Shown here: piece after piece, positions 10,488 through 64,000 of the stretch
Layout of the letters: every line of letters starts with the position of its first letter
Numbering within the stretch: the stretch's first letter is position 1
IMG/VR virus record: IMGVR_UViG_3300036770_008729
Coordinates: 186,001-250,000 of that record
Reading direction: 5' to 3' (one strand)
DNA: 64,000 nucleotides
The notes under the pieces: generated by a model
Database searches by the model: none
What the model was told of the DNA's origin: nothing
What the model saw: the letters and a program-made list of their open reading frames with translations, nothing else
Made by a program: the position numbers and the translations under genes

Positions 10488-10537
10488 TAAACTTTTGATT
10501 CTGATGCTATATAAAAATAAATAAAATATAATTTATT

Positions 10538-10777: not shown

Positions 10778-10971
10778 TTAAAGATATAACCAAAAAAATT
10801 CATAAAAGAAGAAGGCTTTTTAGAAGTAGATTTTCTCTTCTCTAATAAAGCCTTTTCTATTTTTGATACTAAATATTTTCTAGCCAATTCTGATTTGGAA
10901 CAGTCTCTCATTTTACAACTAATGAGATAAGAATTAGCTAATAATATTGAATCTATAACCTGTTTTTCCAC
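10774..10971 (-). CDS. Small hypothetical protein (probable GTG start at 10971)
   Basis: Fills intergenic gap; TATATA motif upstream; ORF track version extended to 11046. Confidence 0.45.
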   Translation of the reverse strand: MEKQVIDSILLANSYLISCKMRDCSKSELARKYLVSKIEKALLEKRKSTSKKPSSFMNFFGYIFN

Positions 10972-29443: not shown

Positions 29444-30046
29444 CTACAATTTTATAAAATCTAATTCTTTAAGTGAAAACGTAATAAACATTATAGAAAA
29501 CAATATTCCAATCAAATTAAAAGAAACTAAATAAAAGACTAAAAGCAAAACACTAAATAAAAGAGAAATCCATGCACTTATTGTAATTGATTTTTGTCTA
29601 TCTCCTGTTTTTAATACTAAAATACTTCTCAATATACGACCACCATCTAAAGGAAAGATTGGAATTAAATTGAATATAAAAAGAAATAGATTGACTAAAT
29701 ACATGCTGTAAAAAAACTGACAAGGAAAAAATGCGTAGGCAAATAGTGATAGTGATATTAAGACTAAATTGACCCAAGGTCCAGCACCAACTATTAGTAT
29801 CATATCTCTTTCTCTGATAGAATCTATATTCATATTGGCTTGACCAGCGAATAATCCAACTTCTATACCAGTGACACTATATCCTTTTTTTTGAGCCACC
29901 CAAGCGTGACCAATTTCATGGAGTAGAATTGAAATAAAGATTGAGACTACAAAGACTGGTGATAGCCAAAAGAAAAGCAGTAAAAACCATAAGCTAAGAT
30001 TAACAGGAACACCCCTGAAGTTGAAAATTTTGATTTGTGTTTTCAT
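29444..30046 (-). CDS. Site-2 protease, M50 family
   Basis: HEIGH, GAGPWVN, FNLIPIFPLDGG. Confidence 0.9.
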   Translation of the reverse strand: MKTQIKIFNFRGVPVNLSLWFLLLFFWLSPVFVVSIFISILLHEIGHAWVAQKKGYSVTGIEVGLFAGQANMNIDSIRERDMILIVGAGPWVNLVLISLSLFAYAFFPCQFFYSMYLVNLFLFIFNLIPIFPLDGGRILRSILVLKTGDRQKSITISAWISLLFSVLLLVFYLVSFNLIGILFSIMFITFSLKELDFIKL

Positions 30047-30106
30047 TTAATATATTTTTTATAAAGATAAAAAAACCCTATGAATTATCAAAGGGTCTTT
30101 TTTTTA

Positions 30107-31576
30107 TTATTTTATTATTGATACTTTATCTATTGTTAAATCCCCAGTATGTTTACCGTTATCTTTGTAAATGGTAATGTTATATTCAGCAGACGCTGGA
30201 ACCTCATACTCAAAAGTAAACTCTGGTCTTCCATTTTTATTTAACTTCCTACAACATCCCTTCTCACAAGACTTACCAGACATTTTATGGTCTGCTCCAA
30301 AGAAGTTCATAAATCCAGCGAATGTGGAATTTGTAGGGTTACAAACACCATTCTCGTTTACATAAACCTCATAAACACCTTTTGGAACTTTTGTAAAACT
30401 AACAACAACTTCTAACTTTACCTTTTTGGTTGAAGTTAGGTTGATTTGAGTTAAGCCAAGAACTTTGATACCGGTGGTTATCTTACCACTTACTTTAGTT
30501 CCAGGTGTTGATTGTGCAAATAACTTCGGTTCTACCTCATCCATCAATCTAACTTCTTTTATTTTAACAGGAGTGTCATCAAAATCATAATCCATAGTGT
30601 AGATAATATCCAATGCCTCTTCTAAAGAATAAACTACTTTCTCACCATTCTCATTGAAGAAAACATAAGGCCACTCTACTTCTTCTAACTGTTCTATTGT
30701 AACAGGTTGACCATTATTAGAATTGTGCCATTGTTGCCAAATACGGTCTATATTAGAATGATGTGTCCAAAAGATAGGATCGAAAGCAGCAGTTGGAACC
30801 CAACCCATAAGTCCAGTATTTGTGGTAGTTCCAGTAATTGAATTATTAAACTGTAAAGTTCCTGTTGTATCATTACCAGCACCAATGTAATCATGCATTG
30901 CACCGTGAGGAGCATTATTTATGTTAAGACAAAACATTTTATAATCAGTATAACTCATTATTTTTGTTAAGTCTAAAGATCTACTAATTTCACCAGATAC
31001 CGGCCATCCATCATTCAAACTATCATATCTAGCTTCTTCAAAAAGTGAAGAGTGTTTATCTCTAAATAAATCTGGAATACATCTATCTCTATCATTATTA
31101 TTTGTATAAGCCCAATAAGGAAGTGCAAAATCATTATATCCTGATAATTTTCTAACTATTTTTTCAAAGTGCCAGATATAAAGACGGTGCCAAACTAAAA
31201 AGTGTAATTTTTCTTTACCTGATGGAGTGTGAGTACAATTATCCCAACCATCCATTTTATCACCTACATTGTGATAAGCACCACACCATCGATTGTTTTT
31301 AATTGTATCAGGAACCCAGTGAATGGCACCTTGATAATACCAACTCAGGGGATCTTTACAATCTTTTTTTCTCATAATATCTAAAGCTTTGTTTAAGGCT
31401 AAAAGGTCGTTAATGGCTTCAGGTGAATTTGCATTTTTTCTTGTAAATCTTTGTTGTTCTGTTTGTTTCTCGTTATTACTACAAGAAAAAAGAAACATAC
31501 TAAAAACGATTAAGAAAAAGATAATAAGACCAATAAATAACTTTTTAAGGTCTTTGTAAGTAGTGAATCGATTCAT
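30107..31576 (-). CDS. Tyrosinase / polyphenol oxidase (type-3 copper), predicted lipoprotein
   Basis: IHW, CTH, FLVWHR, PHGAMH, DPIFWTHHSNIDRIW; LFSC lipobox-like. Confidence 0.9.
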   Translation of the reverse strand: MNRFTTYKDLKKLFIGLIIFFLIVFSMFLFSCSNNEKQTEQQRFTRKNANSPEAINDLLALNKALDIMRKKDCKDPLSWYYQGAIHWVPDTIKNNRWCGAYHNVGDKMDGWDNCTHTPSGKEKLHFLVWHRLYIWHFEKIVRKLSGYNDFALPYWAYTNNNDRDRCIPDLFRDKHSSLFEEARYDSLNDGWPVSGEISRSLDLTKIMSYTDYKMFCLNINNAPHGAMHDYIGAGNDTTGTLQFNNSITGTTTNTGLMGWVPTAAFDPIFWTHHSNIDRIWQQWHNSNNGQPVTIEQLEEVEWPYVFFNENGEKVVYSLEEALDIIYTMDYDFDDTPVKIKEVRLMDEVEPKLFAQSTPGTKVSGKITTGIKVLGLTQINLTSTKKVKLEVVVSFTKVPKGVYEVYVNENGVCNPTNSTFAGFMNFFGADHKMSGKSCEKGCCRKLNKNGRPEFTFEYEVPASAEYNITIYKDNGKHTGDLTIDKVSIIK

Positions 31577-31664: not shown

Positions 31665-33359
31665 ATGAAATGGATTAAAACTAGAAAACAATTTTTGATA
31701 GAAGCTATCGAGGATGAAATATTCCCTAGACAAGCTGAAGCGATTAAAAGGACTTGGGGTGAAAAATATTTAAAAATGACCAAGCCTCCTGTATCAAATG
31801 AACTTAAAAAATATGAAGGTAAATGGAAATTATCCGAAGAAGATAAATTAAAAATGCTAGGATCCTTCTTTCAATGTGATATGAAGGTCATTTTTGATAA
31901 TATTGCTAGTTTACCAGATAAGTTTTGTTATACGATTGCTCAATCAATTAGTATTCCACAAACTCCAGAGCCTGAAAAGTATGAAGTAGTTCTAAAAGAC
32001 TTCAATATGAAAGAACCTTCTATTGACCAAATTGTAGCAATTTTTGATAACATTTTCCGAAAATTAAATGTTAATGAAACAATTAGTGATTCTATGATTC
32101 AAAAAGATGAATCCGGAAGACCAATTAGAGATTCAGAAGGACAGATGGTAAAGGTTGCAAAAGAAAAAGGATCTCCTATTTTTACTAATAGTTGCACTAA
32201 CATTACTTCTTTCTGTGATGATTACAACAGATGTTATCCAGATGAAAAAGTAGATACAAATATTTTCACTGAAAATAATATAAAAAGTTTAAGAAACTTA
32301 GCAAAAGAAGATTGTAACGGTAAATTAAAAGTAGATTTTGAAATTTTTAACAAAGATCTTTACTTATCATTTTCTCACAATGAGAAGGACATATTAAATA
32401 TGTCTATATCAAAGTTCTACAATTCTTGTCAAAATCTTTATGATGGAGGATACAGAGAACAATTATTAGGTAATATATTTGATCCTAACTCAGCTCCAGC
32501 ATTTATGACATTTGATACTCCTATTTTCTGGGGAGATGAAAAGGTATCAGATCAATTACCTCTTTCAAGAACAGTAATAAGAAATATTGAGAATTTTGAT
32601 GGGTCTAGTCGAGGTATTTTCTTTGATAGAACTTATCCTGATAGATGTGAAAAAGTATTCAAAGAGTTATTAGTTAAGTATAGCAAAATGCAACAAACAA
32701 TAACAGATAGAGATTCTGTTACTTACTTATTTACACCAGACATCGATCCATCAGACACAGGAGTTAAAACTCCTTATATGGATAGATTAGGTGTTGATAG
32801 AAAACCAATGATTGGAGTAAATTGTAAAGCACTTTACTTATCAAGAGTAGGTGATTGGTCTGGTATAAAGATTTCACCAAATGCAAAGATTAAAGAATTA
32901 GTGGTTGAAACAACCGAAATTCCTCAGAACTTATTTGACCTTAAATTAAACTTAGATTGGATTAAATTTAAGTATTTACATTTGAAAGATTTAAAACCAT
33001 TTGGTGGTTTATTCACTGATTCAGTTGCTTTTGATAAATGTAAATTAAAGAATGAAGTTCTTCAAGAAAGAAAAGAAACTAAGAAGTTACAATTAATCAG
33101 TTGTGACATCGATGCGATTGATTTGTCTGGTTTCTCTAAATTAGAAGAGTTACACTTATTGTTAACTTTAAAAGATATAGATGAACTTAAAAGAACACTT
33201 ACAGGAACTAAACTAAAAAAGTTAGTTATCTCTGATGAAATATTAGGATTCTCTAAAAAAGATAGAAAAATGAGAATGTCTGAAGAAGCTTCTCAATTCA
33301 TCGAAGGATTAAAAAGAACTGGTGTGTCAGTAGAAATAAAAGGAATTTATAATAAATAA
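31665..33359 (+). CDS. Hypothetical protein with CTS-like N-terminus and LRR-like C-terminus
   Basis: MKWIKTRKQFLIE; LxxLxL repeats. Confidence 0.75.
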   Translation: MKWIKTRKQFLIEAIEDEIFPRQAEAIKRTWGEKYLKMTKPPVSNELKKYEGKWKLSEEDKLKMLGSFFQCDMKVIFDNIASLPDKFCYTIAQSISIPQTPEPEKYEVVLKDFNMKEPSIDQIVAIFDNIFRKLNVNETISDSMIQKDESGRPIRDSEGQMVKVAKEKGSPIFTNSCTNITSFCDDYNRCYPDEKVDTNIFTENNIKSLRNLAKEDCNGKLKVDFEIFNKDLYLSFSHNEKDILNMSISKFYNSCQNLYDGGYREQLLGNIFDPNSAPAFMTFDTPIFWGDEKVSDQLPLSRTVIRNIENFDGSSRGIFFDRTYPDRCEKVFKELLVKYSKMQQTITDRDSVTYLFTPDIDPSDTGVKTPYMDRLGVDRKPMIGVNCKALYLSRVGDWSGIKISPNAKIKELVVETTEIPQNLFDLKLNLDWIKFKYLHLKDLKPFGGLFTDSVAFDKCKLKNEVLQERKETKKLQLISCDIDAIDLSGFSKLEELHLLLTLKDIDELKRTLTGTKLKKLVISDEILGFSKKDRKMRMSEEASQFIEGLKRTGVSVEIKGIYNK

Positions 33360-36765: not shown

Positions 36766-38391
36766 ATGAAAAAACTGCTTTATATCACACCACATCTTTC
36801 AACTGGTGGGCTTCCACAGTATCTACTTAAGAAAATAGAAACATTCAATAATCAATTCGAAATCTGGTGCATTGAATGGTCTAACATAAGTGACCACTTT
36901 ATAGTACAAAAAAATAAAATTAAGCACATCTTAGGTAATAAATTAATAACATTAGGTAAAGATAAATTTGAATCATTAAACATTATTGGTCAAATTAATC
37001 CAGATATAATTCATATTGAAGAAATACCAGAAACATTTATTGATTCAAAAATCTTAGACATCATTTACAGAGATGATAGAAATTACAGCATTGTTGTAAC
37101 AACTCATTCATCTAATACTAAACCAGGAAGTATTAAATATACGGCTGATAAATTTATATTAGTATCAGAGTGGAGTAAAGGTGTATTTGATAATATATTC
37201 AAAGGAAGTATTCCATGTGAGGTATGGGAATATCCTGTTATAAAGGTTGACTATGATAAGGATAAGGTTAAAGAAGAATTAGGATTTGATAAAGAATATA
37301 AACATATTTTAAATGTTGGTTTATTTACTCCTGGTAAAAATCAAAAACATATAATAGAACTGGCTAGACTTTGTGTAAATGAAAAGATTAAATTTCACTT
37401 TGTGGGAAATCAAGCTGATAATTTCAAAGATTATTGGGAACCTCTAATAGATAATCTACCAGAGAACTGTATATTACACGGTGAAAGAGATGATGTTGAT
37501 AAGTTCTATATGGCTAGTGATTTATTTTATTTTCCATCATTATGGGAACTTAATCCAATATCTATAAAAGAAGCTCTTAGTTTTGGTCTTCCGATTTTCA
37601 CCAAAGACTTAGAAACATATCCTAAATACAAAGAGTCTAAATACATAACAGATAATGTATCAGTAAATAAAAATATGATATTAGAGCATTTTGGAATCAC
37701 TATTGAAAATGATTCAATTTGTTTAGTTATGGCACATGCTGATACAAATTATAGAAAGAAGTTATTAAATGAATGTTTAAGTTCTATTAATCTACCGGTT
37801 GTTTTATCTACAAACTATCCAGTAAGTGAAGAAAATCAATTATTATGTGATTATTATATTTATAACAAAAATAACCCCCTATTATATAAAGAAGAATATA
37901 GTAAATATAATGTATTTTATAACTATTGGTATTTAGATAATAATGGAAATAAGATAACAAAACCATTTGAATTTGAGCATGGTTATGCCGCTTACTCTCT
38001 AATAAGAGATGGTTTAGAGTTTATAGAAAAACTCGGTTATAAAAAAGTTCACATCATAAACTATGATTATCAAATATCAAATAAAACACTTAATGATAAT
38101 TCTAAATCTTTAGATAATTGTGATATTATTGTTTACCAACAACTTGAAGAAAACTATGAAGCTGGATTTATATCATCTAAAATAGACCACATATTACCAT
38201 TTTTTACCAAATTCAAAAGCAGAGAATCTTATTATAAATCAGGTGAACCATTTAATATTTTAGAAATAAAGTTAAAAAAATATATAGATGCTCAAAATTC
38301 AAATATATCTAAAAGACCGTTTGATTCACTAAAAGAATATAATAAAGTAAATCAAGAAGGACTCCTTCAATTTTCAAAATCAAAAGAATAA
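36766..38391 (+). CDS. GT4 (GT-B) glycosyltransferase with extra C-terminal domain
   Basis: PHLSTGGLPQY, ILNVG, HFVGNQA, DLFYFPS.WELNPISIKEA. Confidence 0.85.
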   Translation: MKKLLYITPHLSTGGLPQYLLKKIETFNNQFEIWCIEWSNISDHFIVQKNKIKHILGNKLITLGKDKFESLNIIGQINPDIIHIEEIPETFIDSKILDIIYRDDRNYSIVVTTHSSNTKPGSIKYTADKFILVSEWSKGVFDNIFKGSIPCEVWEYPVIKVDYDKDKVKEELGFDKEYKHILNVGLFTPGKNQKHIIELARLCVNEKIKFHFVGNQADNFKDYWEPLIDNLPENCILHGERDDVDKFYMASDLFYFPSLWELNPISIKEALSFGLPIFTKDLETYPKYKESKYITDNVSVNKNMILEHFGITIENDSICLVMAHADTNYRKKLLNECLSSINLPVVLSTNYPVSEENQLLCDYYIYNKNNPLLYKEEYSKYNVFYNYWYLDNNGNKITKPFEFEHGYAAYSLIRDGLEFIEKLGYKKVHIINYDYQISNKTLNDNSKSLDNCDIIVYQQLEENYEAGFISSKIDHILPFFTKFKSRESYYKSGEPFNILEIKLKKYIDAQNSNISKRPFDSLKEYNKVNQEGLLQFSKSKE

Positions 38392-38671: not shown

Positions 38672-38877
38672 TTGCTTATCAATAGTTCCTCGAGCTTTTT
38701 TATTAAATCTTTATCTTTTAATTCTCTCCACTCGGTTCCATATTTTTCCCATCTATCTTTAATCTTTTTGTAAGCGCAAAAATGACCAGAACCATCTTCA
38801 ACATATAGTATTTTGTATGACACTTCTTCAATCCTTAGTAGTTTCATGATTCTTTTTTTCTTTTTTAATACCATCAA
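38668..38877 (-). CDS. Hypothetical protein
   Basis: ORF track. Confidence 0.5.
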   Translation of the reverse strand: MMVLKKKKRIMKLLRIEEVSYKILYVEDGSGHFCAYKKIKDRWEKYGTEWRELKDKDLIKKLEELLISK

Positions 38878-39166
38878 AAATACCAGATATAGTCATACTT
38901 AAACCCAAACTAATTGGTATTGTAAATTCTGGATAATGATAAAACGGTCTAACATTACCTCTAAGTAAATAAGGATGAAGTGAAAACCCAGCCCCAACTA
39001 AACACATGCCAGTAACTATTTTAAATTCTGATTTTTCCACATAAACGGATTGTGGAATTTGTTGACTGAAACTCATCTGTAGTCTTAAAAAGAAAAGTAA
39101 AAAAAGAAACCATTTCATATGATATATATTATAATGAAAAGTTCTATAAAAACAAAAAAAGAACAT
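38828..39166 (-). CDS. Membrane protein (start probably MKWFL)
   Basis: Signal plus TM segments. Confidence 0.5.
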   Translation of the reverse strand: MFFFCFYRTFHYNIYHMKWFLFLLFFLRLQMSFSQQIPQSVYVEKSEFKIVTGMCLVGAGFSLHPYLLRGNVRPFYHYPEFTIPISLGLSMTISGIFDGIKKEKKNHETTKD

Positions 39167-56295: not shown

Positions 56296-57606
56296 TTATT
56301 GTTCATCTGATAGAGAGTAGTTGATTTCATCCAGAATTGAATCGGTTGGGAATTTTTCTCCTCTTTTATTATAAAAGAAACCATCTCTAAATTTTACCAA
56401 TTCGGAATCATCATTCATATTATCAGGTAATACACAATCATTCCATAATTCGATAATTTGATTAGGTGTAGTAGTTTTGCCAATTTCCACTCTTAATACT
56501 TCGAGTTCTTCTGGAATTTCAATTTGGGGTTCTTGCTCTGATTTAGCTCCTTGTTCTGCTTTTATACGAGCTTCTATTTCTTTGGCATGATCTTCTAAGT
56601 TCTTTGCTGAGGCATCTGCCTTTCTAATAGGATTGCCTTTTTCGTCCTTAATTAGATTGCCGTCTTTATCTAAAAGAAAGTCTTCTTCATATTCTGGTAG
56701 CAACCCTAACTTTTTACGTTGTTCTAAATCTTTTTTATCTCTTTCTCTAATACCAGCAGCGGCTCTTTTATAAGTCTCTGGATTTAATTCTTCATTAACG
56801 AATGATTCAAATAATTTTAGGTATTTCATATTATTTTTACTTTCAGCAACTGATTTTTCAGACTCATCAATTACTCTTTTAAGTTCAGCTGTATTATCAA
56901 CACTAACAACTTCATCAAATCCTTCTTTTGATAAAACATCTTTTATTTTTTCTTCATCAAAAGGAATGCCTTTATCATCTTGTAAGTCATATGATGTAAA
57001 CATTCTATCAAATGCAGCAGGTGGTATAGTTTTAGATTTACCTTTAGCTTTCATTTCTTCTGATCTTTTAGCTGCCATTTTTTTGATAATTTCTTCAGCT
57101 CCTTTGAAGTTAAAAACAACTGCTACTTTATGATATTCGCCTTCAACACCTTCAATAACTTTAAGTGCTCCTTTTCTTGAACCAGAGTTCATATTGGTCA
57201 TATCGACTACAATATTTTCTTTTCCTTTACCTTCGGCAATTCTTTTGTTAAATATATCTTGAATTTTACCGTTAGCTTCTAAAACTCTATCATAAGAAAG
57301 TGGTGCCCAAGTCATATAAGCTGGTGATTTAATAACGGTGCCATATTTTTCATTTTTATCACCTTCTTTTTCAACATCTTTAATGGGTAATGAGAAAAGG
57401 TCATCATATGTCCAACCATACTCTGCATACTCTTCAGCAACTTTTTCGACAATATCATCTCTATTTATTACAAATGGTTGTATTTCACCAAATTTGGTTT
57501 TTATCCAAGTTGATTTACCTACAGATGGAGGTCCAATAAGAACATATATTGTTTTATCTTTAACTTCTTCACCTTCAAATACTCTGAAATTTTTAATATT
57601 CCTCAT
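56296..57606 (-). CDS. P-loop kinase (AAA_33 / PNK-like) with N-terminal and internal CTS-like motifs
   Basis: GPPSVGKSTW, INRDDI, VVDMTNM..SR; MRNIKNFRVFE and MKYLKLFESFVNEE. Confidence 0.8.
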   Translation of the reverse strand: MRNIKNFRVFEGEEVKDKTIYVLIGPPSVGKSTWIKTKFGEIQPFVINRDDIVEKVAEEYAEYGWTYDDLFSLPIKDVEKEGDKNEKYGTVIKSPAYMTWAPLSYDRVLEANGKIQDIFNKRIAEGKGKENIVVDMTNMNSGSRKGALKVIEGVEGEYHKVAVVFNFKGAEEIIKKMAAKRSEEMKAKGKSKTIPPAAFDRMFTSYDLQDDKGIPFDEEKIKDVLSKEGFDEVVSVDNTAELKRVIDESEKSVAESKNNMKYLKLFESFVNEELNPETYKRAAAGIRERDKKDLEQRKKLGLLPEYEEDFLLDKDGNLIKDEKGNPIRKADASAKNLEDHAKEIEARIKAEQGAKSEQEPQIEIPEELEVLRVEIGKTTTPNQIIELWNDCVLPDNMNDDSELVKFRDGFFYNKRGEKFPTDSILDEINYSLSDEQ

Positions 57607-57697
57607 GCTATTATATTTCCTTTTTTATTTATAGTATATATTATAAATTGAGGAGATATTTTTAATAATCAGTTCAACGGTGTATTGGACTCTTTTG

Positions 57698-57810
57698 TAG
57701 TCAGGACAGGAATCGAACCTGCATGTGGGCCTTGTGTGTATTTCAACTATACTGCGGGTTTATCCACTCCGTTTAACTATTCGGTGCGTTTACCATTTCG
57801 CTACCTGACT
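57698..57810 (-). ncRNA. tRNA-scaffold RNA A (113 nt)
   Basis: AGTCAGG/CCTGACT acceptor, GCG/CGC D-stem, GCAGG-TTCGATT-CCTGT T-arm, no canonical anticodon arm. Confidence 0.75.
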
Positions 57811-57812
57811 AT

Positions 57813-57893
57813 TTGAGGATGAGAAGCCCTCTGTGTTGGTAGTAACTCAACTATCTACATTTACTCATCTCCTTTCTCAAGGGAACAACACAA
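57813..57893 (-). ncRNA. Structured RNA, kissing-loop type, copy 1
   Basis: Conserved ends shared with 58888-58981. Confidence 0.55.
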
Positions 57894-57976
57894 AAAATTA
57901 GAGTTGTTTCGGGAGCTTCACCCGCCTTCGAATATACTTGTATCTCTCAGTTAAGAGTCAATACGAGCTTTTTACT

Positions 57977-58348
57977 TTACAACTCAAATAGTATATTATT
58001 TAATTTCATTTCTCTTATTTTTTCATTTAAGTAAGGTCTTTTAGAAAGCATTGACCATACTGGTCCATAATTGTTAATTAGTGGTTTTGTATGGATTGTG
58101 ATATCAGATATATTTAATGTGTAGTCCATTTTTACATAGCCATATCTTTTATCTGCTTTTGCAACACCGGTAGATTCTACTCTGATAAATTCATCAGATA
58201 TGTTAATAATGTTATATTCCCACATATCACCAGCTTCTTCATATCCAGAGTCGTTAGGTATAAACAACCTAAATTGGACTATTGGATCATAAACAAATCC
58301 TAGACTGGCAAATATATCAATCAGGTCTTTAAGTATTTTATTTTTCAT
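57977..58348 (-). CDS. Hypothetical protein with tag (IREMKLNNIL)
   Basis: ORF track. Confidence 0.7.
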   Translation of the reverse strand: MKNKILKDLIDIFASLGFVYDPIVQFRLFIPNDSGYEEAGDMWEYNIINISDEFIRVESTGVAKADKRYGYVKMDYTLNISDITIHTKPLINNYGPVWSMLSKRPYLNEKIREMKLNNILFEL

Positions 58349-58452
58349 AAATTATTAAAACCAATATAAGCAATTATTATTACTAGTATCATAAGGATTA
58401 AACATCCATTATCTTCTGCACCAATTGGGTCGTTATCTAAATTATCATTCAT
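58345..58452 (-). CDS. 35-aa single-TM peptide (MNDNLDNDPIGAEDNGCLILMILVIIIAYIGFNNL)
   Basis: Translated manually; ATGA overlap with next gene. Confidence 0.5.
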   Translation of the reverse strand: MNDNLDNDPIGAEDNGCLILMILVIIIAYIGFNNL

Positions 58453-58457
58453 AAATG

Positions 58458-58563
58458 TAGTCAGGACAGGACTCGAACCTATAATCTGAATAACCTATAT
58501 CATCTTGATTTATTACCAATGATATTTTGTATTCACGCTTTAACCCAATTTCGCCACCTGACT
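58458..58563 (-). ncRNA. tRNA-scaffold RNA B (106 nt)
   Basis: Same acceptor; ATAGG-TTCGAGT-CCTGT T-arm; elongated helix in place of anticodon arm. Confidence 0.75.
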
Positions 58564-58569
58564 AATTAA

Positions 58570-58709
58570 AATATGAAGGCATATCGGTCGTTCCCAAGTT
58601 TGAATGATTAACCCCTGCCATACTCTTTGACTCGCTAAAGTCATACCATTTGAGATGTTAATCCTTGTCTGATTGGACTATACGTAACTCATCCACTCAG
58701 CTTCATATT
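58570..58709 (-). ncRNA. Stem-closed RNA element (140 nt)
   Basis: Terminal IR aatatgaag/cttcatatt between scaffolds B and C. Confidence 0.45.
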
Positions 58710-58712
58710 GTG

Positions 58713-58883
58713 TAGTCAGGACAGGACTTGAACCTGTATGTTTAGTTTTTACACTTTCACTTTTGATCAGATACTTGTGAAGGATGTTAATCAGACTTCG
58801 GTGAGATCAAATCACCTACACATCTACTCTAAACTTAACCTACCCTTTAGGATTTTCACGTCTACTAATTCCGTCACCTGACT
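58713..58883 (-). ncRNA. tRNA-scaffold RNA C (171 nt)
   Basis: Same acceptor; covarying D-stem ACG/CGT; ACAGG-TTCAAGT-CCTGT; multibranch insert. Confidence 0.75.
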
Positions 58884-58887
58884 ATAT

Positions 58888-58981
58888 TTGAGGATGAGAA
58901 GTCCTCTGTGTTGTAGAAGATTACACATCTATTCTTCTCTTTGCATTTCAGTTTCATTCCTTTCTCAAGGGAACAACACAA
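58888..58981 (-). ncRNA. Structured RNA, kissing-loop type, copy 2
   Basis: TGTGTTG/CAACACA stem, CCTT-GAGA-AAGG, GAGGA-CTTCTCA-TCCTC. Confidence 0.55.
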
Positions 58982-58988
58982 TATTTTA

Positions 58989-59203
58989 TAAACAACTACC
59001 GCCTTCTAAGTTGGGTGTTTGTATAGGCCCAAACCCCTATACTCCATCCTTTACATAATTTTTCAATGTATCTATAAACACATTAACCTAAACCACCCAC
59101 ATCTTAGAAATGTGAGGTAACTCTTCCTACTCTGACATGATTAATAATGACCGTTGATAATCATTAATAGAGTCAATATTTAGTGTTAATCAGTAGTTGT
59201 TTA
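58989..59203 (-). ncRNA. Stem-closed RNA element (215 nt)
   Basis: 13-bp terminal stem with a G-U pair on the minus strand; internal hairpins. Confidence 0.5.
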
Positions 59204-59206
59204 ATA

Positions 59207-59218
59207 TTTCAAAGAACT
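59207..59218 (-). promoter_or_regulatory. boxA-like AGTTCTTTGAAA
   Basis: 3' of scaffold D; repeated 3' of element E. Confidence 0.45.
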
Positions 59219-59223
59219 ATTTG

Positions 59224-59345
59224 TAGTCAGGACAGGATTCGAACCTGTAAGGTAACATTCGGTTTCAAGACTCTCCTCTATACCGATCAGAGGATGTAGT
59301 TACCACTTTACTCGTCTAATGCGTCTACCATTCCGCCACCTGACT
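59224..59345 (-). ncRNA. tRNA-scaffold RNA D (122 nt)
   Basis: Same acceptor; GCG-GAATGGTAGA-CGC Leu/Ser-type D arm; ACAGG-TTCGAAT-CCTGT. Confidence 0.75.
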
Positions 59346-59350
59346 ATGAA

Positions 59351-59422
59351 ATACCGATGCCTTTACTTTCACGAGGACTTGCGTGTCTTCTTAACATTAC
59401 TGTCTTAGGACCCCATCGGTAT
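59351..59422 (-). ncRNA. Stem-closed RNA element (72 nt)
   Basis: IR ataccgatg/catcggtat. Confidence 0.45.
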
Positions 59423-59426
59423 ATTA

Positions 59427-59653
59427 TGAATCAATCAAGAGCACTTATCTTTATGTTCAGAAGGTCATTCTCTATTCCACAAATTAATTTTACAGATGGT
59501 AGTACTTTTACAAAAACTTTTGCGTGTTTTATGCTCGGACTTATACACGTTATCAGCCATTAAAAAAGCAGGCCTATCGTAAACACTTACTCAAAGGATG
59601 GACATCAAGGAGCCTAATCCCCAATGAATTGGGTTTAACCAGTGATTGATTCA
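59427..59653 (-). ncRNA. Stem-closed RNA element (227 nt)
   Basis: Perfect 11-bp IR tgaatcaatca/tgattgattca. Confidence 0.45.
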
Positions 59654-59674
59654 ATATATTCAAAGAACTATTTG

Positions 59675-59750
59675 TCGTTAGGGTAGGACTCGAACCTACA
59701 ATCTTTCGGGATTTTCACCCGAACGCTCTATCAAATTGAGCCACCTAACT
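59675..59750 (-). tRNA. tRNA-Phe-like element with damaged anticodon arm (pseudo-tRNA E)
   Basis: AGTTAGG acceptor (A1-G72 mismatch), GCTC/GAGC D-stem, TTCGGG-TGAAAAT-CCCGAA, GTAGG-TTCGAGT-CCTAC. Confidence 0.6.
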
Positions 59751-59756
59751 ATAATA

Positions 59757-59788
59757 CAAAGATAATAATAATTTTTATTATGACCAAA
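59757..59788 (-). promoter_or_regulatory. Bacteroidota promoter TTTG-N20-TATCTTTG driving the ncRNA array
   Basis: -7 box ends 6 nt before the first base of element E. Confidence 0.65.
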
Positions 59789-59808
59789 TTTATTCTGCTT
59801 TTAAACAA

Positions 59809-59835
59809 TACAAAAAAACGTAGCGGATTTTTGTA
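59809..59835. repeat. Inverted copy of the TACAAAAATCCGCTACGTTTTTTTGTA palindrome
   Basis: Reverse complement of copies at 54541, 54850 and 56211. Confidence 0.85.
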
Positions 59836-59839
59836 TTGT

Positions 59840-60640
59840 TTAAATTGGTAGATTTACTTTGGATAATATTTGGTTCGAAACATGAGTGTAAATTTCAGTA
59901 GTTTTTACATTTGAGTGACCTAATATTTTCTGAATTACTCTTAAATCAGTACCATTTTCCAATAGATTTGTTGCACAACTATGTCTCAATTGGTGAATGT
60001 GATATTTTTCACCCAAATATTTTTTAACAATTTGATTACAGCTACCAGAACTATATTGTAAACTATTTTGACCATTGAAAAGGTATTCTTTTGGTCTATA
60101 TTCTTTAAAATATTCTCTAAGTAATTCTAATATTTTCTGGGATAGGGGTAAGACTCTATCTTTTCTACCTTTAGCATTTTTAATATGAATAATCATTCTT
60201 TTGGAATCGATATCTTCAATTTTAAGGTTAATTACTTCCGATACTCTTAATCCGACTGAATAAGTTAAAGATAATATCGTTTTATGTTTAAGATTAGTAA
60301 TTTTAGATAATTGTTCTTTAATGTAATCACCATCAATAACCTGTGGTAACTTCTTCTCAGATTTGGGTCTTTTGAAACTAACCTTATCATATTTCTTATT
60401 AAGTCCGAATTTGTAGAGGAAACGGATTGCGTTAATAACCTGATTTTGTTGTGAAACAGAAGTAAAACTATAAGTATCTAAATATGATTGAAAATCATTA
60501 GATGTGAGTCTAGTTGGTGAAATTTTTATTGTAGCTAAAAATTGATTAATATAATGGAGATAGGATTTTATTGTCCTATCTGAGTAATTTAAATACTTCA
60601 ATTTTTGATTACAAATTTCGTAATAATCTGTTTTTTTCAT
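59840..60640 (-). CDS. Tyrosine recombinase (integron-integrase-like N-domain, XerD-like catalytic domain)
   Basis: GLRVSE, NAKGRKDR, HQLRHS, LGH, TEIYTHV; catalytic set intact. Confidence 0.92.
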   Translation of the reverse strand: MKKTDYYEICNQKLKYLNYSDRTIKSYLHYINQFLATIKISPTRLTSNDFQSYLDTYSFTSVSQQNQVINAIRFLYKFGLNKKYDKVSFKRPKSEKKLPQVIDGDYIKEQLSKITNLKHKTILSLTYSVGLRVSEVINLKIEDIDSKRMIIHIKNAKGRKDRVLPLSQKILELLREYFKEYRPKEYLFNGQNSLQYSSGSCNQIVKKYLGEKYHIHQLRHSCATNLLENGTDLRVIQKILGHSNVKTTEIYTHVSNQILSKVNLPI

Positions 60641-60692
60641 ATGTGAAATATATATGAAATAAGAAAAAAAGTTTAATTATAGATATAATCTA

Positions 60693-60699
60693 GTTAGTG
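60693..60699 (+). other. attI-like crossover core G|TTAGTG
   Basis: Complementary to CACTAAC of the first attC; no palindromic arm on the recombinase side. Confidence 0.65.
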
Positions 60700-60957
60700 T
60701 CAATATTGCCTATGCTTATTTACTACCTCTTTACCGCAGCTTTTACACGTCCACTTACCATACTGCTCGCCATTAACCCCAGTTCGGCTAACGCATTGGC
60801 AATACTTTTTGCTTCGCCCACTAACATCGTGTATGCGTAAGGCTGCTTCGTACCCTGCAATAAAATCTCGTACTTTTTGTTCGTACCATCCTGCATCGTC
60901 TATCTTATATCTGAAACTTTCAGCATATAATTCAGCTTGTTTTTTTATATCTTCCAT
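60700..60957 (-). CDS. Cassette 1 ORF, C-terminal Zn-ribbon-like
   Basis: CQC...WTCKSCG; starts inside its attC. Confidence 0.7.
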   Translation of the reverse strand: MEDIKKQAELYAESFRYKIDDAGWYEQKVRDFIAGYEAALRIHDVSGRSKKYCQCVSRTGVNGEQYGKWTCKSCGKEVVNKHRQY

Positions 60958-61012
60958 TCTAATTAAATTTATCGTTAATAAATCGCCCTACGCATACACG
61001 CAGCCGTTATAC
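60819..61012 (+). other. attC-like site 1 (194 bp)
   Basis: CACTAAC-at-16 bp arm...arm-cagcc-GTTATAC. Confidence 0.8.
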
Positions 61013-61282
61013 GCAATTATATAACACCCAATCGTGAATAAATTTTATTGAAGAATTAAAAGCATCAATCCAATCAGGATAACATCCACAATCTTCTTCT
61101 ACCCATTCACCATTTTGCTTCCAATAAACATATCCACGCCAACATATGCCAACATCTTCCAGCTTATATCCATCAGCAAGAACTTCAATAAAAATTCCTT
61201 TATCTGAATAACTGCGTATAACAGCAGGTATATTCAATTGCGGTTTCTGTGCTTCATTCAAGTTTTGTTCTTCTATGCTCAT
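61007..61282 (-). CDS. Cassette 2 ORF (start MSIEEQ)
   Basis: Subset of ORF-track 61007..61468; stop lies in the R box. Confidence 0.65.
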   Translation of the reverse strand: MSIEEQNLNEAQKPQLNIPAVIRSYSDKGIFIEVLADGYKLEDVGICWRGYVYWKQNGEWVEEDCGCYPDWIDAFNSSIKFIHDWVLYNCV

Positions 61283-61346
61283 TTGTTCTAAATTTAAGTT
61301 TTGTAATTTTAAGTCCGCAACTAAATATACCTGCAAAACGTTATGT
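61216..61346 (+). other. attC-like site 2 (131 bp)
   Basis: GTATAAC-a-20 bp arm...arm-aaaac-GTTATGT. Confidence 0.8.
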
Positions 61347-61415
61347 GTAAGTGTTCCGTTCATCTTACTAATCAACATTTTGGTTGAAAATTTTAAAAGA
61401 AAAATCCCACACACA

Positions 61416-62246
61416 TTAAATGATTTTAATATATTTTGGTGGTATATTATCATATGTGAAAAAACCACCCTTGAATCTCAAATCTTTATATAAAGATAAT
61501 CCTTTGAAGTTTTCTATTCTTAAATTAACATATTCACCACCTTTATCACCAACTAACTCTTGTTTTATTGAAGACATCCATTCTTCATTAGGCGATAAAT
61601 AAATTCTCTCAGGATAAAAACTTCTAGTATTTTTTGTTTTTGGTATTAAACCATATTTCATTATCTTATCTAAATTTTTGGAGTCGGTTGTGTGATAAAG
61701 ATATTCACCTTCAAAATTAACTTTGTCATCATAATTTGGTTCTATCATTATGGATATTCTATCACTAGATATTAAGGTTTTTTCTATATCATTTTTATCA
61801 GTTAGTTTTTCACCTGGTTTAAGATTTACGACAGATATAAAATATCCCATATTATCTATTAATGATATAAGACCAAGTGATAATTCCTTATTATTAAAAT
61901 CTGTAAATATTGATATATCACCATAATTAAATTCACTTATTTGTTTTTCTAAATCCGAGATAGTCTTGTCTATATCAACCCCTCCTTTAATTAGACTTTT
62001 TGTTAATGAATCATTTTTGTCTTTATAGCCTTTTAACATTCTATTCATCGTAAATTTATCGGTGATGATTTGATAATATGGTGAATTCACATCTTCGCCA
62101 AAATTAGATTTTTTATTTAGACCATTTCCAATAAAGAAATTATCTAATTTTTTTATAACAATATCAAGTTTATCTGATTTTAGTGTTTCGTTAAGTAAAT
62201 TAAATTTTCTAAAACTGTTTATATATTTTCTCATTTCCTTACTCAT
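61416..62246 (-). CDS. Cassette 3 ORF: CTS-type protein with C-terminal Tpt1/ART-like domain
   Basis: MRKYINSFRKFNLLNE; YLYHTT...I.KYGLIP...RIYLS. Confidence 0.7.
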   Translation of the reverse strand: MSKEMRKYINSFRKFNLLNETLKSDKLDIVIKKLDNFFIGNGLNKKSNFGEDVNSPYYQIITDKFTMNRMLKGYKDKNDSLTKSLIKGGVDIDKTISDLEKQISEFNYGDISIFTDFNNKELSLGLISLIDNMGYFISVVNLKPGEKLTDKNDIEKTLISSDRISIMIEPNYDDKVNFEGEYLYHTTDSKNLDKIMKYGLIPKTKNTRSFYPERIYLSPNEEWMSSIKQELVGDKGGEYVNLRIENFKGLSLYKDLRFKGGFFTYDNIPPKYIKII

Positions 62247-62359
62247 AGTATTTCTTTTATATATAAATATTGAGAATTAAAACTTCCACCCTTCTTTTTC
62301 TTTTAAAATTTTTGTTTAGTTCTCCGAATGAAATTTAGTAGTTAATAACCCACACCTAC

Positions 62360-62413
62360 ACATAACAAATGATAAACAACATTAAAACGATTGTTTATCA
62401 TTAGTCGTTAGAA
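62360..62413 (+). other. attC-like site 3 (54 bp)
   Basis: ACATAAC-aa-atgataaacaa...ttgtttatcat-tagtc-GTTAGAA. Confidence 0.85.
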
Positions 62414-62420
62414 GCAATGC

Positions 62421-62654
62421 CTAATCAAGCGTTACTTCACTTTTATAAAGTCCGATGTTAAATCGGTATGTTTCGTTCTTTGAGAATGATACAAAAATAC
62501 TTCCTCCGTATTGGTTTATATTTGTTGGTTCTCTGCCAAGCGATACATTTTTATAAGTTTCTGCTAAGTATTTTTGTACTTCCATAGGCACAGCTTCTAA
62601 CAGCAAGTTAGCGTTATTGCCTATTTCGTTGGTATTCGATGTTTCATTTTTCAT
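62421..62654 (-). CDS. Cassette 4 ORF
   Basis: Starts inside its attC. Confidence 0.7.
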   Translation of the reverse strand: MKNETSNTNEIGNNANLLLEAVPMEVQKYLAETYKNVSLGREPTNINQYGGSIFVSFSKNETYRFNIGLYKSEVTLD

Positions 62655-62729
62655 ATTAAAATTTGTTTAAAATTGATACTGTATTATTTCAAATGTCGGC
62701 AACAAACGCCAACTTGCGAATCGTTATAT
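62595..62729 (+). other. attC-like site 4 (135 bp)
   Basis: TTCTAAC-a-arm with one extrahelical base...-gaatc-GTTATAT. Confidence 0.8.
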
Positions 62730-63014
62730 GCAATTAAAAATGGGCAACGACCATCGTTTTGCATTTGGAAATTTCTTTTTATACATTGCTTTTACTCGAA
62801 GTTTTACGAGTTCTTTAATCTGCTCATCATTCATCCATTGGCTTGCTCTGTCATTCAGCCTTGTTTCTACAATTATGTCTGCTTCTTCGGATAGTAGGAA
62901 TGGGTGTCCGTGTTTGAACTCGTAAAACCATCTTTTCAACTGCCAATTTTTAACAGCATATAACAAAGTATTGCCAATAGTGGCAGTTTGTGAGTTGTTT
63001 GAAGTTTGTTGCAT
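62724..63014 (-). CDS. Cassette 5 ORF
   Basis: Starts inside its attC; stop lies in the R box. Confidence 0.7.
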   Translation of the reverse strand: MQQTSNNSQTATIGNTLLYAVKNWQLKRWFYEFKHGHPFLLSEEADIIVETRLNDRASQWMNDEQIKELVKLRVKAMYKKKFPNAKRWSLPIFNCI

Positions 63015-63087
63015 CTTATTTAGTTTATTGGTTAATCAAAATTTATCTCTTTTAATGCCACCATCGGCAATACTTGGCACGTTATAA
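62958..63087 (+). other. attC-like site 5 (130 bp)
   Basis: ATATAAC-a-20 bp arm...arm-ggcac-GTTATAA. Confidence 0.8.
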
Positions 63088-63097
63088 AACAGTTTAA

Positions 63098-63325
63098 TTA
63101 TAGTATTTTACCACACTTACTGCACACATAACATTGTCCTTTTTCAATAGCATTATGGTTACAAACCGATTTTATAACATCGGCTTGTTGCAATTTTTTT
63201 ACTAACTTATCCAGTTCACTATAAGCTAAGTGTTCCAGTTGAGTTTTGTCGTGTTCACCAAAGTAGTTTCTAATTAACTTTAGGTCTTTAATTTCCTGTT
63301 CTGTTATTTCAATTTCTATTTTCAT
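63098..63325 (-). CDS. Cassette 6 ORF, C-terminal Cys cluster
   Basis: VCNH..CYVCSKCG; starts inside its attC. Confidence 0.7.
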   Translation of the reverse strand: MKIEIEITEQEIKDLKLIRNYFGEHDKTQLEHLAYSELDKLVKKLQQADVIKSVCNHNAIEKGQCYVCSKCGKIL

Positions 63326-63383
63326 TATTATTTAGTGTTGCAAATCCGTAAAAAAACTGACAACAAGCCGCAAACAGTTATAA
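63172..63383 (+). other. attC-like site 6 (212 bp)
   Basis: TTATAAC-at-cggcttgttg...caacaagccg-caaaca-GTTATAA. Confidence 0.8.
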
Positions 63384-63665
63384 AACATTTAATGAATCGT
63401 CAGTAATATCATCCATCACTAAACAAGACTCATTATTAGTTTCGTGATAATTTAAAAATCCTTTTGGGTATTCAAATATTGTTGTTAATAATTTCATCCC
63501 TTCACCACAATGAGAACATTTTAATTCACCACGATATGTGTGTTCGTATTCAAAACTAATTGAGCGTTGTTCCTTATCTGTTCCTATGTGTTTCATTTCA
63601 ATAAAATGTTCTTCTCTACATTCTAAACATCTTACTCTAACCAAAGGATTTTTAAATTCTACCAT
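63378..63665 (-). CDS. Cassette 7 ORF, Zn-binding (CLEC...CSHC)
   Basis: ORF track; stop lies in the R box. Confidence 0.75.
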   Translation of the reverse strand: MVEFKNPLVRVRCLECREEHFIEMKHIGTDKEQRSISFEYEHTYRGELKCSHCGEGMKLLTTIFEYPKGFLNYHETNNESCLVMDDITDDSLNVL

Positions 63666-63676
63666 AAATAAACGTT

Positions 63677-63769
63677 TTATAACAAGGTATATATGAAATA
63701 CCCTATTAAGGTTTCTACTAATTTTTAAATTAATCGTTAGGGTACTTCATATATACCCAACCGTTATGT
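63677..63769 (+). other. attC-like site 7 (93 bp)
   Basis: TTATAAC-aa-19 bp arm...arm-caacc-GTTATGT. Confidence 0.85.
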
Positions 63770-63792
63770 ATAATAAATTAAAAAATATGAGT

Positions 63793-64000
63793 TTATTCAT
63801 TTTCCTTAATCCATTTATCAAAAAGCTTTTGTGGATTTTTATTATAAAGTCTCCATAATGTAAATCTCATCAAATCACTTTGGTTTAAACACTTCGGATG
63901 TTCCTTAACTATCAAATCAGCTTTCTGTTCATCAGTTAAACAATGTCTCCACCAAGCAAGTGCTTCTTCGGTTGCTGGTGTTTCTTTAGCTATGTGAGAT
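63793..64000 (-). CDS. Cassette 8 ORF, partial (...LAWWRHCL...KWIKENE)
   Basis: Translated manually; start lies beyond the window. Confidence 0.6.
   Translation of the reverse strand, partial: SHIAKETPATEEALAWWRHCLTDEQKADLIVKEHPKCLNQSDLMRFTLWRLYNKNPQKLFDKWIKENE

Follow-up and report, generated by a model that had tools for sequence, protein, structure and literature searches.

Within the window, a 64,000-nucleotide stretch of the 281-kb IMG/VR contig IMGVR_UViG_3300036770_008729, we found a tyrosine recombinase gene (59840..60640, minus strand), an attI-like insertion site beside it, and an array of seven complete gene cassettes plus part of an eighth. The recombinase of 266 aa belongs to the Xer/IntI branch, with Pfam matches to Phage_integrase (5e-39) and Phage_int_SAM_4, and its catalytic motifs are intact. 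In NCBIfam it scored 196.7 bits against XerA_Arch and 163.7 bits, in two stretches, against integrase_gron, both below cut-off. It lacks the IntI-specific insertion, since the PDB structure XerA 4a8e aligns contiguously while VchIntIA 2a3v aligns in two pieces that skip about 48 residues, and the motif spacing is 59 aa as against 106-109 in IntI. In a phylogenetic tree, it falls in a separate clade beside IntI, within a 99%-supported group with IntI and apart from E. coli XerC/D. A perfect 17-bp inverted repeat (59800..59844, minus) overlaps the recombinase stop codon and looks like a terminator, although this function is only inferred.

The attI-like site (60641..60699) has a conserved left half ending ...GATATAATCTAG, with the crossover lying within G|TTA at 60693|60694, 53 nt upstream of the recombinase ATG. 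The gene points away from the array, and the G|TTA boundaries occur at 60693, 61006, 61340, 62407, 62723, 63081, 63377 and 63763. The 5' GTTA box of each cassette is complementary to a TAAC box inside the same cassette, with the C at 60825, 61222, 62366, 62601, 62964, 63178 and 63683, in runs of 7/7, 14/15, 14/15, 9/9 (continuing to 15/17), 9/9, 9/9 and 14/15. The recurrent mismatch at position 10-11 is A/C on the plus strand, which is G.T on the minus strand. An earlier note, made from the sequence alone, had described this layout, the pairing of each cassette with its own TAAC box and the G-T mismatches; every coordinate it gave was confirmed, and our pairing counts match or slightly exceed its own. 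The note did not, however, spell out the hairpin that lies between each TAAC box and the next GTTA, which has a 12-20 bp stem and an 11-150 nt loop, with 1-2 unpaired nt on one side and 4-6 on the other.

All the cassettes are on the minus strand. Cassette 1 (60694..61006) carries an ORF of 85 aa with CxxC motifs (60700-60957) and an attC at 60819-61006 (stem arms 60828-60843 / 60985-61000), with the ORF start in the 141-nt loop. Cassette 2 (61007..61340) carries an ORF of 91 aa (61007-61282) whose stop codon is the core TTA, and an attC at 61207-61340 (stem arms 61224-61243 / 61315-61334). Cassette 3 (61341..62407) carries an ORF of 276 aa (61416-62246), the C-terminal part of which weakly resembles RNA 2'-phosphotransferase (Tpt1-like hints), and a short attC at 62352-62407 (stem arms 62368-62379 / 62391-62402). 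The non-coding ends of this cassette are conserved in cassettes that carry other genes, and its ORF has a 69% nt match in the 735-kb phage LR756501, outside any array. Cassette 4 (62408..62723) carries an ORF of 77 aa (62421-62654) and an attC at 62593-62723 (stem arms 62603-62615 / 62705-62717). Cassette 5 (62724..63081) carries an ORF of 96 aa (62724-63014) whose stop codon is the core TTA, and an attC at 62941-63081 (stem arms 62966-62985 / 63056-63075), and the outer stem formed with its own 5' end is 22/24. The whole of this cassette is found at 83% identity, boundary to boundary, at a different rank in L034 (L numbers denote loci and contigs of our comparison). Cassette 6 (63082..63377) carries an ORF of 75 aa with a CxxC motif (63098-63325) and an attC at 63170-63377 (stem arms 63181-63200 / 63351-63370), whose 150-nt loop holds most of the ORF. 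Cassette 7 (63378..63763) carries a zinc-ribbon-like ORF of 95 aa (63378-63665) whose stop codon is the core TTA, and an attC at 63669-63763 (stem arms 63686-63705 / 63738-63757). Cassette 8 (63764..64000) is cut by the window end; in the source contig it ends at a good site about 158 nt beyond the window (covariance-model hit at 6470-6568 in L001, E = 4.3e-09), followed by degenerate sites. None of the cassette proteins in the window has a firm function.

To determine whether such sites could arise by chance, we searched both strands of the window with a structure-based finder for this architecture, which returned exactly these 7 sites and none elsewhere. A covariance model trained only on sites from other contigs found 6 of the 7 on the minus strand (E = 4.5e-16 to 0.48), its only other match being a plus-strand echo of its best site. 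The best hit was cassette 7 (82.6 bits, E = 4.5e-16), followed among the others by cassette 3 (E = 2.5e-10), cassette 2 (E = 2e-05), cassette 1 (a partial hit at 60917-61019, E = 0.052) and cassette 4 (E = 0.48), with cassette 5 also found; cassette 6 was missed, probably because of its long loop.

We then performed a comparative analysis and found that the recombinase, attI and array recur in more than 80 viral contigs (up to 362 kb), and that Bacteroidota prophages and a cultured Polaribacter phage carry the same sites. The earlier note had considered such a platform in a jumbo phage very unusual, but it is a large family in Bacteroidota phages and prophages. In related loci, 315 sites were counted in one orientation beside the 5' end of the recombinase gene and 10 in the other. 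A conserved ..ATATA(A/T)nnAG|TTA lies 52-60 nt upstream of the recombinase start in nearly all viral and Bacteroidota loci, with unrelated sequence after TTA. Related loci carry terminase, head and replication genes within 10 kb of the array. No capsid or terminase gene lies in the window itself, and its phage identity rests on the IMG/VR assignment, a few PHROG hits and one large ORF of 1914 aa, which has homologs only in 634-642 kb uncultured phages.

The structure of the sites is conserved. All four Watson-Crick pair types occur at each stem position, with 83-99% paired over the first 11 positions against 11-62% when the partner is slid, and RNAalifold on 64 sites from other contigs gave 18 pairs, 12 of them with compensatory changes. 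A.C mismatches on the plus strand number 410 against 53 G.T, which is indicative that the minus strand is the one that folds. With DNA parameters, the minus strand folds better at all 7 sites of the window, and the circular form is 2.5-11.6 kcal/mol more stable than the array form. Over 230 cassettes, 8.45 of 12 positions pair with the cassette's own 5' end, compared to 4.23 with the next cassette and 4.41 with a random one (p = 3e-35). Nevertheless, the folding strand is also the mRNA sense strand, and G.U-compatible pairing could partly reflect an RNA-level role.

Comparisons of near-identical contigs support recent insertion and exchange of cassettes at attI. Contigs L004 and L006 are 99.84% identical over 10,853 nt and diverge at the attI G|TTA, while L008 and L011 are 100% identical over 2,651 nt up to attI and differ after it. 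L009 is L011 plus one cassette of about 800 nt at attI, and the cassette after it matches the first cassette of L011 at 100% over the 118 nt that the contig provides. Among 21 metagenome contigs with the same attI-left, at least 13 different first cassettes were found. Transfer between divergent phages was also observed: a 309-nt cassette is 100% identical in L028 and L051, with identity breaking at cG|TTA on both sides, although their recombinases are only 60.5% identical.

Cassettes have a median length of 391 bp and usually hold one small ORF; 224 of 233 cassette ORFs are on the folding strand and are oriented toward attI and the recombinase gene. The cargo of the family includes four N6_N4 methyltransferases, a D12 methyltransferase, Mom, RNA ligase, an ADP-ribosyltransferase (ART-PolyVal), YopX and GNAT, and many cassettes probably encode counter-defence or other accessory functions. 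In the Polaribacter phage P12002L, the sites sit directly 5' of methyltransferase and Mom genes. No shared promoter was found, and the Bacteroidota -7 motif is only about twofold enriched upstream of cassette ORFs.

The best explanation, to which we assign a probability of roughly 0.8, is a phage-native functional analogue of an integron, in which a single small tyrosine recombinase of the Xer/IntI branch acts on a site just upstream of its own gene (..ATATAATnnAG|TTA) and on attC-like hairpins, one at the sense-5' end of every cassette. On the minus strand each hairpin reads TAAC-G, a 3-4 nt bulge, the stem and loop, and then T-GTTA; when a cassette is cut out as a circle, its other end would extend the TAAC/GTTA stem to 9-24 bp. 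Exchange between two hairpins would excise a cassette, and exchange between a hairpin and attI would insert it next to the recombinase gene. That the adjacent recombinase is the catalyst is inferred from constant adjacency rather than from experiment, and that the substrate is folded single-stranded DNA is likewise an inference. The IntI domain that reads extrahelical bases in integrons is absent, which leaves the choice of strand unexplained. The crossover cannot be placed more finely than the 4 invariant bases, and its position at G|TT is assigned by analogy with integrons. The inference of the earlier note, an active, integron-like gene-capture platform in a jumbo phage, is supported, with the refinements that the enzyme is not an IntI, the cassette ORFs are reversed relative to classical integrons, the family is large, and one of its sites had already been predicted as an 'attC' (PMC9892861).

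Conceivably, though unlikely, the platform is real but recombines double-stranded DNA or extruded cruciforms in the manner of Xer/dif or pdif modules, with the minus-strand hairpins mainly serving the mRNA as 5'-UTR structure or cistron insulation. The recombinase does score best against Xer-type models and lacks the IntI domain that binds extrahelical bases, and the hairpins are transcribed at the 5' end of each gene. However, as duplex DNA the site has only one conserved arm, because the stem sequences differ between cassettes while the structure is kept. Pairing of the TAAC flank with the cassette's own far end has no role in a duplex reaction or in a linear mRNA of the array, yet it is strongly maintained, and all sites are in direct orientation, unlike pdif modules. 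Still less probable is that the recombinase is simply the phage's integrase or a dimer-resolution enzyme, and that the array is shuffled by homologous recombination between repeated hairpin sequences. Related recombinases in about 40-kb flavobacterial phages and prophages do sit where an integrase would, and some attC sequence families are 90-100% identical between cassettes and could support homologous exchange. Nevertheless, junctions at attI join unrelated sequences that share only G|TTA, the identical cassette of L028 and L051 is flanked by dissimilar sequence on both sides, and huge, probably virulent phages keep arrays of up to 18 sites next to this gene. A canonical bacterial integron picked up from a host, or a misassembled host fragment, is very improbable, for although the core boxes and array layout resemble integrons and integron fragments of host origin are known in a few phages (PMC9892861), the IntI insertion is missing, ORF orientation is reversed, the module occurs in more than 80 viral contigs beside terminase, head, primase and polymerase genes, the cargo is phage-like, and the closest cellular copies lie in prophages or Bacteroidota MAG contigs.

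The system, which is apparently undescribed, shares with bacterial integrons (class 1 and Vibrio chromosomal integrons) a tyrosine recombinase gene next to an attI where cassettes enter at G|TT, and head-to-tail cassettes each with an imperfect-palindrome site bounded by ..TAAC and GTTA.. boxes. In both, site structure is conserved while sequence and length vary, the TAAC box pairs with the cassette's own 5' end, one strand folds better, ORF-less cassettes occur, and variation concentrates at the attI-proximal end. It is not a canonical integron, as the recombinase lacks the roughly 50-aa IntI insertion and the hairpin has a bulge next to the crossover and a long, nearly perfect inner stem rather than the R/L boxes with canonical extrahelical G and T. 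In addition, attC lies at the 5' end of the cassette ORFs, which point toward attI, no Pc-type promoter was identified, the cassettes are very small, and the carriers are phages of Bacteroidota. Among CALINs and integron fragments reported in phage genomes (Qi et al. 2023, PMC9892861), an 'attC' was predicted in P12002L next to methyltransferase genes, and this P12002L_attC1 falls inside one of five matches of our covariance model in that phage. That study used IntI-based tools, found no cognate recombinase, attI or arrays, and read the sites as bacterial-integron components; P12002L_attC1 was the one tested site that IntI1 did not recombine, which fits a different cognate enzyme. XerCD-mediated integration of CTX-phi and other IMEX likewise appears to involve a Xer-type recombinase acting on a hairpin of single-stranded phage DNA, but there the host's XerC/D would integrate a whole filamentous-phage genome at the chromosomal dif site, whereas here a phage-encoded enzyme would move many small cassettes in and out of the phage genome. 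The pdif modules of Acinetobacter plasmids (reviewed in PMC9771954) are also small gene modules bounded by Xer-type recombination sites, but these are generally 28-bp duplex sites in alternating orientation that use the host's XerC/D, while the sites here are directly oriented hairpins in an array beside a dedicated recombinase and attI. The best sequence and structure match is to the dimer-resolution enzymes archaeal XerA (4a8e, 137.6 bits) and bacterial XerC and XerD, with a similar size and two-domain layout; however, all Xer models score below their family cut-offs, and the gene sits in phage genomes beside multi-site arrays rather than acting at a single dif site.

The region contains a 266-aa ORF on the minus strand (59840..60640), and to its right is a run of small minus-strand ORFs. 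G|TTA boundaries occur at 60693, 61006, 61340, 62407, 62723, 63081, 63377 and 63763. For each of the seven complete cassettes, the sequence starting at its 5' GTTA is the reverse complement of a stretch ending in TAAC inside the same cassette, with runs of 7/7, 14/15, 14/15, 9/9, 9/9, 9/9 and 14/15, two of which continue to 15/17 and 22/24. The recurring mismatch, at position 10-11, is A/C on the plus strand, that is, a G.T wobble on the minus strand. Between each TAAC box and the next GTTA we found a 12-20 bp stem around a loop of 11-150 nt, with one or two unpaired bases on the TAAC side and four to six on the GTTA side. The earlier note, which had described an integron-like recombinase and cassette array at these boundaries with pairing between the ends of each cassette, is confirmed, and its inference of an active gene-capture platform carried by a jumbo phage is supported with refinements.

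To determine whether these sites exceed chance, we searched both strands of the 64-kb window with a simple finder for the architecture TAAC, 0-3 nt, stem, loop, stem, 3-7 nt, GTTA, which returned these seven sites and nothing else. A covariance model built from 64 sites taken only from other contigs found six of the seven on the minus strand (E = 4.5e-16 to 0.48), its only other match being a plus-strand echo of the best site; the missed site has a 150-nt loop. A search against Rfam at E <= 0.1 over 57000-64000 returned only tRNAs and nothing at the hairpins. These tRNAs belong to a cluster of tRNA-like genes just downstream of the recombinase gene [57698-57810 (-), 58458-58563 (-), about 58700-58880, 59222-59345, and 59674-59750 (-)]. 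Rfam calls two tRNAs of 113 and 106 nt, about 35-40 nt longer than normal, which suggests inserts or introns, whereas ARAGORN calls only a tRNA-Phe with an AAA anticodon, and two further stretches with T-arm-like sequence are called by neither tool. In addition, a 32-nt inverted repeat (72% complementary; 59745-59776 and 60666-60697) brackets the recombinase gene. One arm is attI and the other overlaps the end of the tRNA gene and starts CTAAC; this may be chance in AT-rich DNA or a secondary site.

The encoded protein is a tyrosine recombinase of the Xer/IntI branch with an intact catalytic set. Pfam matches it to Phage_integrase and SAM_4, and the motifs GLRVSE, KGRKDR, HQLRHS, LGHS and EIYTHV are present. 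Among NCBIfam models the best score is to archaeal XerA (196.7 bits, cut-off 220), followed by the integron integrase TIGR02249 (163.7 bits in two stretches, cut-off 265), XerD (162.3, cut-off 329.6) and XerC (158.6, cut-off 335), all below cut-off. The protein aligns end to end with the solved structure of XerA (4a8e), but with VchIntIA (2a3v) it aligns in two pieces that skip about 48 residues of the integrase (chain residues 182-264 against query 179-213). The distance from the catalytic-lysine motif to HxxR is a constant 59 aa in this clade, against 106-109 aa in 16 IntI-type sequences, including a plasmid integron integrase, and 69-73 aa in E. coli XerC/D. The IntI-specific insertion of about 50 aa in the catalytic domain is therefore missing, and canonical IntI membership was rejected on this ground. 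In a quick maximum-likelihood tree, the phage/Bacteroidota sequences fall in one clade (98% SH-aLRT) separate from the IntI clade (99%), and both lie in a 99%-supported group that excludes E. coli XerC/D. As sampling was biased by how the loci were found, the branching order is provisional. In essence, the enzyme is a relative of IntI and not an IntI. It may be noted that the "integron-like" subgroup of tyrosine recombinases is said to include members without the insertion (PMC8138268).

We then examined how widely the system occurs. Beyond the source contig, IMG/VR UViG_3300036770_008729 (281 kb), eighty further viral loci (designated here by L numbers) encode the recombinase at 52-92% identity, on contigs up to 362 kb, and the protein database holds at least 120 clusters at 76% identity or more, all named only "XerD". 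In these loci, our finder gave 315 sites in the window's orientation against 10 on the other strand. Nearly all lie on the 5' side of the recombinase gene, and arrays reach 18 sites. The main exception is L019 (IMGVR_UViG_3300042879_005260), in which a second array of 7 sites (reverse-complement coordinates 243-2528) lies in the same orientation, 8-10 kb on the other side of the recombinase gene. The architecture TAAC, stem-loop, GTTA holds in 311 unique sites with loops of 11-280 nt. The TAAC side reads C(-10)....TAAC-A-nnnnn-TA and the GTTA side reads AAMC-G|TTA-K-nnnn-M-A-T, with the A at +10 conserved at 98%.

The structure of the sites is conserved while their sequence and length vary. 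Over the first 11 stem positions, all four Watson-Crick pair types occur and 83-99% are paired (92-100% if minus-strand wobbles are counted), whereas pairing falls to 11-62% when the partner column is slid. RNAalifold on the folding strand of the 64 sites gave TAAC.G paired with T.GTTA (a G.T wobble in 62 of 64 sequences), then a 3-4 nt bulge, then a 13-bp stem, and twelve of the 18 pairs have compensatory changes. With symmetric scoring, stem mismatches are A.C on the plus strand 410 times and G.T 53 times, and with DNA energy parameters the minus strand is the more stable at all seven window sites. These observations are only indirect support for recombination of a folded single strand. Over 230 cassettes, 8.45 of 12 positions beyond the core pair with the cassette's own 5' end, against 4.23 for the neighboring cassette and 4.41 for a random one (Wilcoxon p = 3e-35), which is the signature of a circular intermediate. 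Joining each window cassette's own end to its hairpin lowers the folding energy by 2.5-11.6 kcal/mol.

Comparisons among related loci are indicative that the platform is, or very recently was, active. The left half of attI (..ATATA(A/T)nnAG) lies 52-60 nt upstream of the recombinase start in almost every locus, including Bacteroidota genome copies, and what follows TTA differs from locus to locus. L004 and L006 are 99.84% identical over 10,853 nt and diverge exactly at attI. L008, L009, L010 and L011 have 100% identical recombinase genes. Of these, L008 and L011 are identical over 2,651 nt up to attI and then carry different first cassettes, while L009 carries one extra cassette of about 800 nt at attI, and the cassette after it matches L011's first cassette at 100% over the 118 nt before the L009 contig ends. 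L007 and L012, with recombinases 99.5% identical, differ in their attI-proximal cassettes and share distal sequence. Twenty-one metagenome contigs with the same 27-nt attI-left carry at least 13 different sequences after G|TTA. For the phage of the window itself, only the recombinase gene is shared at nucleotide level with the closest relatives, L002, L003, L005 and L013, so cassette order could not be compared for this exact phage, and a metagenome scan with the attI-left motif found relatives only; where the recombinase gene was alignable, its nucleotide identity was at most 78%. Since attI has A at position -1 and attC has C, and each keeps its own base, the crossover lies within the invariant GTTA; we place it at G|TT by analogy only.

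Cassettes also move between phages as whole units. A 309-nt cassette is 100% identical in L028 (rank 9) and L051 (rank 13), with identity stopping at cG|TTA on both sides, although their recombinases are only 60.5% identical. Window cassette 5 occurs boundary to boundary, at 83% identity, at another rank in L034. In L026, a 149-nt cassette too short to hold a gene is present twice within one array, 100% identical (reverse-complement 3303-3451 and 3694-3842), and a cassette with the same opening sequence is the first cassette in L006. The non-coding 5' 80 nt and 3' 150 nt of window cassette 3 (61341-61420 and 62251-62401) are 82-94% identical to the ends of cassettes that carry different genes (in L030, L031, L051 and L021), and the two ends also contain an 18-nt perfect inverted repeat (61387-61404 / 62295-62312). 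This looks like a large conserved shell around exchangeable ORFs, possibly holding expression signals.

Cassettes have a median length of 391 bp with ORFs of a median 88 aa. The start codon lies a median 100 nt from the cassette's sense-5' end, and in long-loop sites it lies inside the hairpin loop. In 44 of 217 cassettes, including window cassettes 2, 5 and 7, the invariant core TTA at the cassette boundary (61007-61009, 62724-62726 and 63378-63380 in the window) doubles as the TAA stop codon of the cassette's ORF, so that the recombination core and the outer stem encode the protein's C-terminus. Among the 49 largest cassette ORFs, Pfam finds four N6_N4 DNA methyltransferases, a D12 methyltransferase, Mom, an RNA ligase, ART-PolyVal, YopX and a GNAT. 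The window's own cassettes encode small proteins without firm matches; only cassette 3 has a weak Tpt1-like C-terminal signal, in three libraries. The 735-kb phage LR756501 has a homolog of the cassette-3 gene but no sites and no recombinase within 15 kb.

Most proteins of the window are ORFans, and most window ORFs have no Pfam or PHROG hit. A few ORFs match PHROGs, including a virion structural protein family. A 1914-aa ORF (4743-10487, plus strand) has homologs only in 634-642 kb uncultured phages, while two further large ORFs have no match in the phage collection searched. A tyrosinase-domain protein (30107-31576, minus strand) and a DNA methyltransferase (13810-14649, plus strand) were also noted. 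The related loci carry terminase large subunit, head morphogenesis, primase, helicase and polymerase genes within 10 kb of the array. The closest cellular copies are all in Bacteroidota. In the cultured Flavobacterium urumqiense CGMCC 1.9230 (NZ_FNVP01000009, about 7770-10790), a 53%-identical recombinase, an attI-like site and two or three hairpin sites lie inside a prophage, between a primase and head protease/terminase genes, making it a possible laboratory model. On the other hand, Cellulophaga phage Ingeline and Polaribacter phage Freya, whose integrases are 43% and 40% identical, have no arrays by our finder or the covariance model. Both Freya_10 and Ingeline_1 carry only GTTAGCAACAAT, which matches the cassette 5'-end consensus, about 50 nt upstream of the integrase gene, and Freya genomes differ by up to 5 kb in a block of small co-oriented ORFs upstream of the integrase.

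In full-text literature searches, whose coverage was incomplete such that prior description cannot be excluded, we found no description of a phage-native, non-IntI cassette platform. Qi et al. (2023; PMC9892861) screened 10,705 phage genomes with IntI-based tools and reported integron parts in 21 of them, including a "CALIN" with methyltransferases in the virulent Polaribacter phage P12002L (NC_028924). Our covariance model finds five sites in that phage (E = 1.7e-8 to 2e-3), at 29997-30066, 30898-30965, 32212-32291, 38024-38100 and 38868-38946, all on the minus strand. Each lies directly 5' of a DNA methyltransferase or Mom gene, in two tandem clusters, and the phage has no annotated integrase; this is a recombinase-less counterpart of the array. 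P12002L_attC1 lies inside one of these five hits and, by the authors' account, is the one tested site that IntI1 did not recombine, which fits a site built for another enzyme. IntI-based tools such as IntegronFinder probably miss the whole family, because the enzyme is annotated only as XerD.

The best explanation is a phage-borne functional analogue of the integron, probably run by the adjacent recombinase, which belongs to a sister lineage of IntI, and probably acting on folded single-stranded DNA. The main rival is duplex-DNA recombination, with the hairpins serving the mRNA. Perhaps phages of Bacteroidota, from about 40-kb temperate phages to genomes over 300 kb, carry their own integron-type system, run by a recombinase lineage that sits beside IntI but never had, or lost, the IntI insertion, which recombines hairpin-tagged mini-cassettes as folded single strands and trades counter-defence genes between co-infecting phages. 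We consider this broader reading only slightly more likely than not. It would be a phage-side mirror of the bacterial integrons now known to store anti-phage defence cassettes, and would mean that hairpin-site cassette recombination is older or more evolvable than the IntI family alone suggests. The system offers a way for huge phages to gain and swap small accessory genes, and may allow the recognition of a folded strand by a tyrosine recombinase to be studied without the IntI domain.

In pdif modules, the flanking sites alternate in inverted orientation, whereas the sites here are in direct orientation. Xer/dif dimer-resolution systems have one 28-bp duplex dif site per replicon, with two 11-bp arms and a 6-8 bp spacer, and a recombinase that passes the XerC, XerD or XerA cut-offs; here the recombinase passes none of them and there are arrays of hairpin sites. 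Integrons are treated as a bacterial, and recently archaeal, invention defined by IntI, of which phages were thought to carry only stray fragments. In common with integrons, the system has a tyrosine recombinase of the Xer/IntI branch, an attI next to its gene where cassettes are inserted, attC-like imperfect inverted repeats whose TAAC box pairs with the cassette's own 5' end, and independently mobile cassettes. Unlike integrons, in which cassette ORFs read away from attI with attC at their 3' end and are expressed from a common Pc promoter, in 224 of 233 cassettes the longest ORF is on the recombinase strand and reads toward attI, with the hairpin at the sense-5' end of the gene, so that the folding strand is the mRNA strand. 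No Pc or other common promoter was identified; the Bacteroidota -7 motif TAnnTTTG occurs upstream of cassette ORFs 48 times against about 23 expected, an approximately twofold enrichment which is suggestive only. The platform appears to work like an integron, but with a different recombinase lineage, an apparently differently built hairpin and the opposite gene orientation, and it is native to phages.
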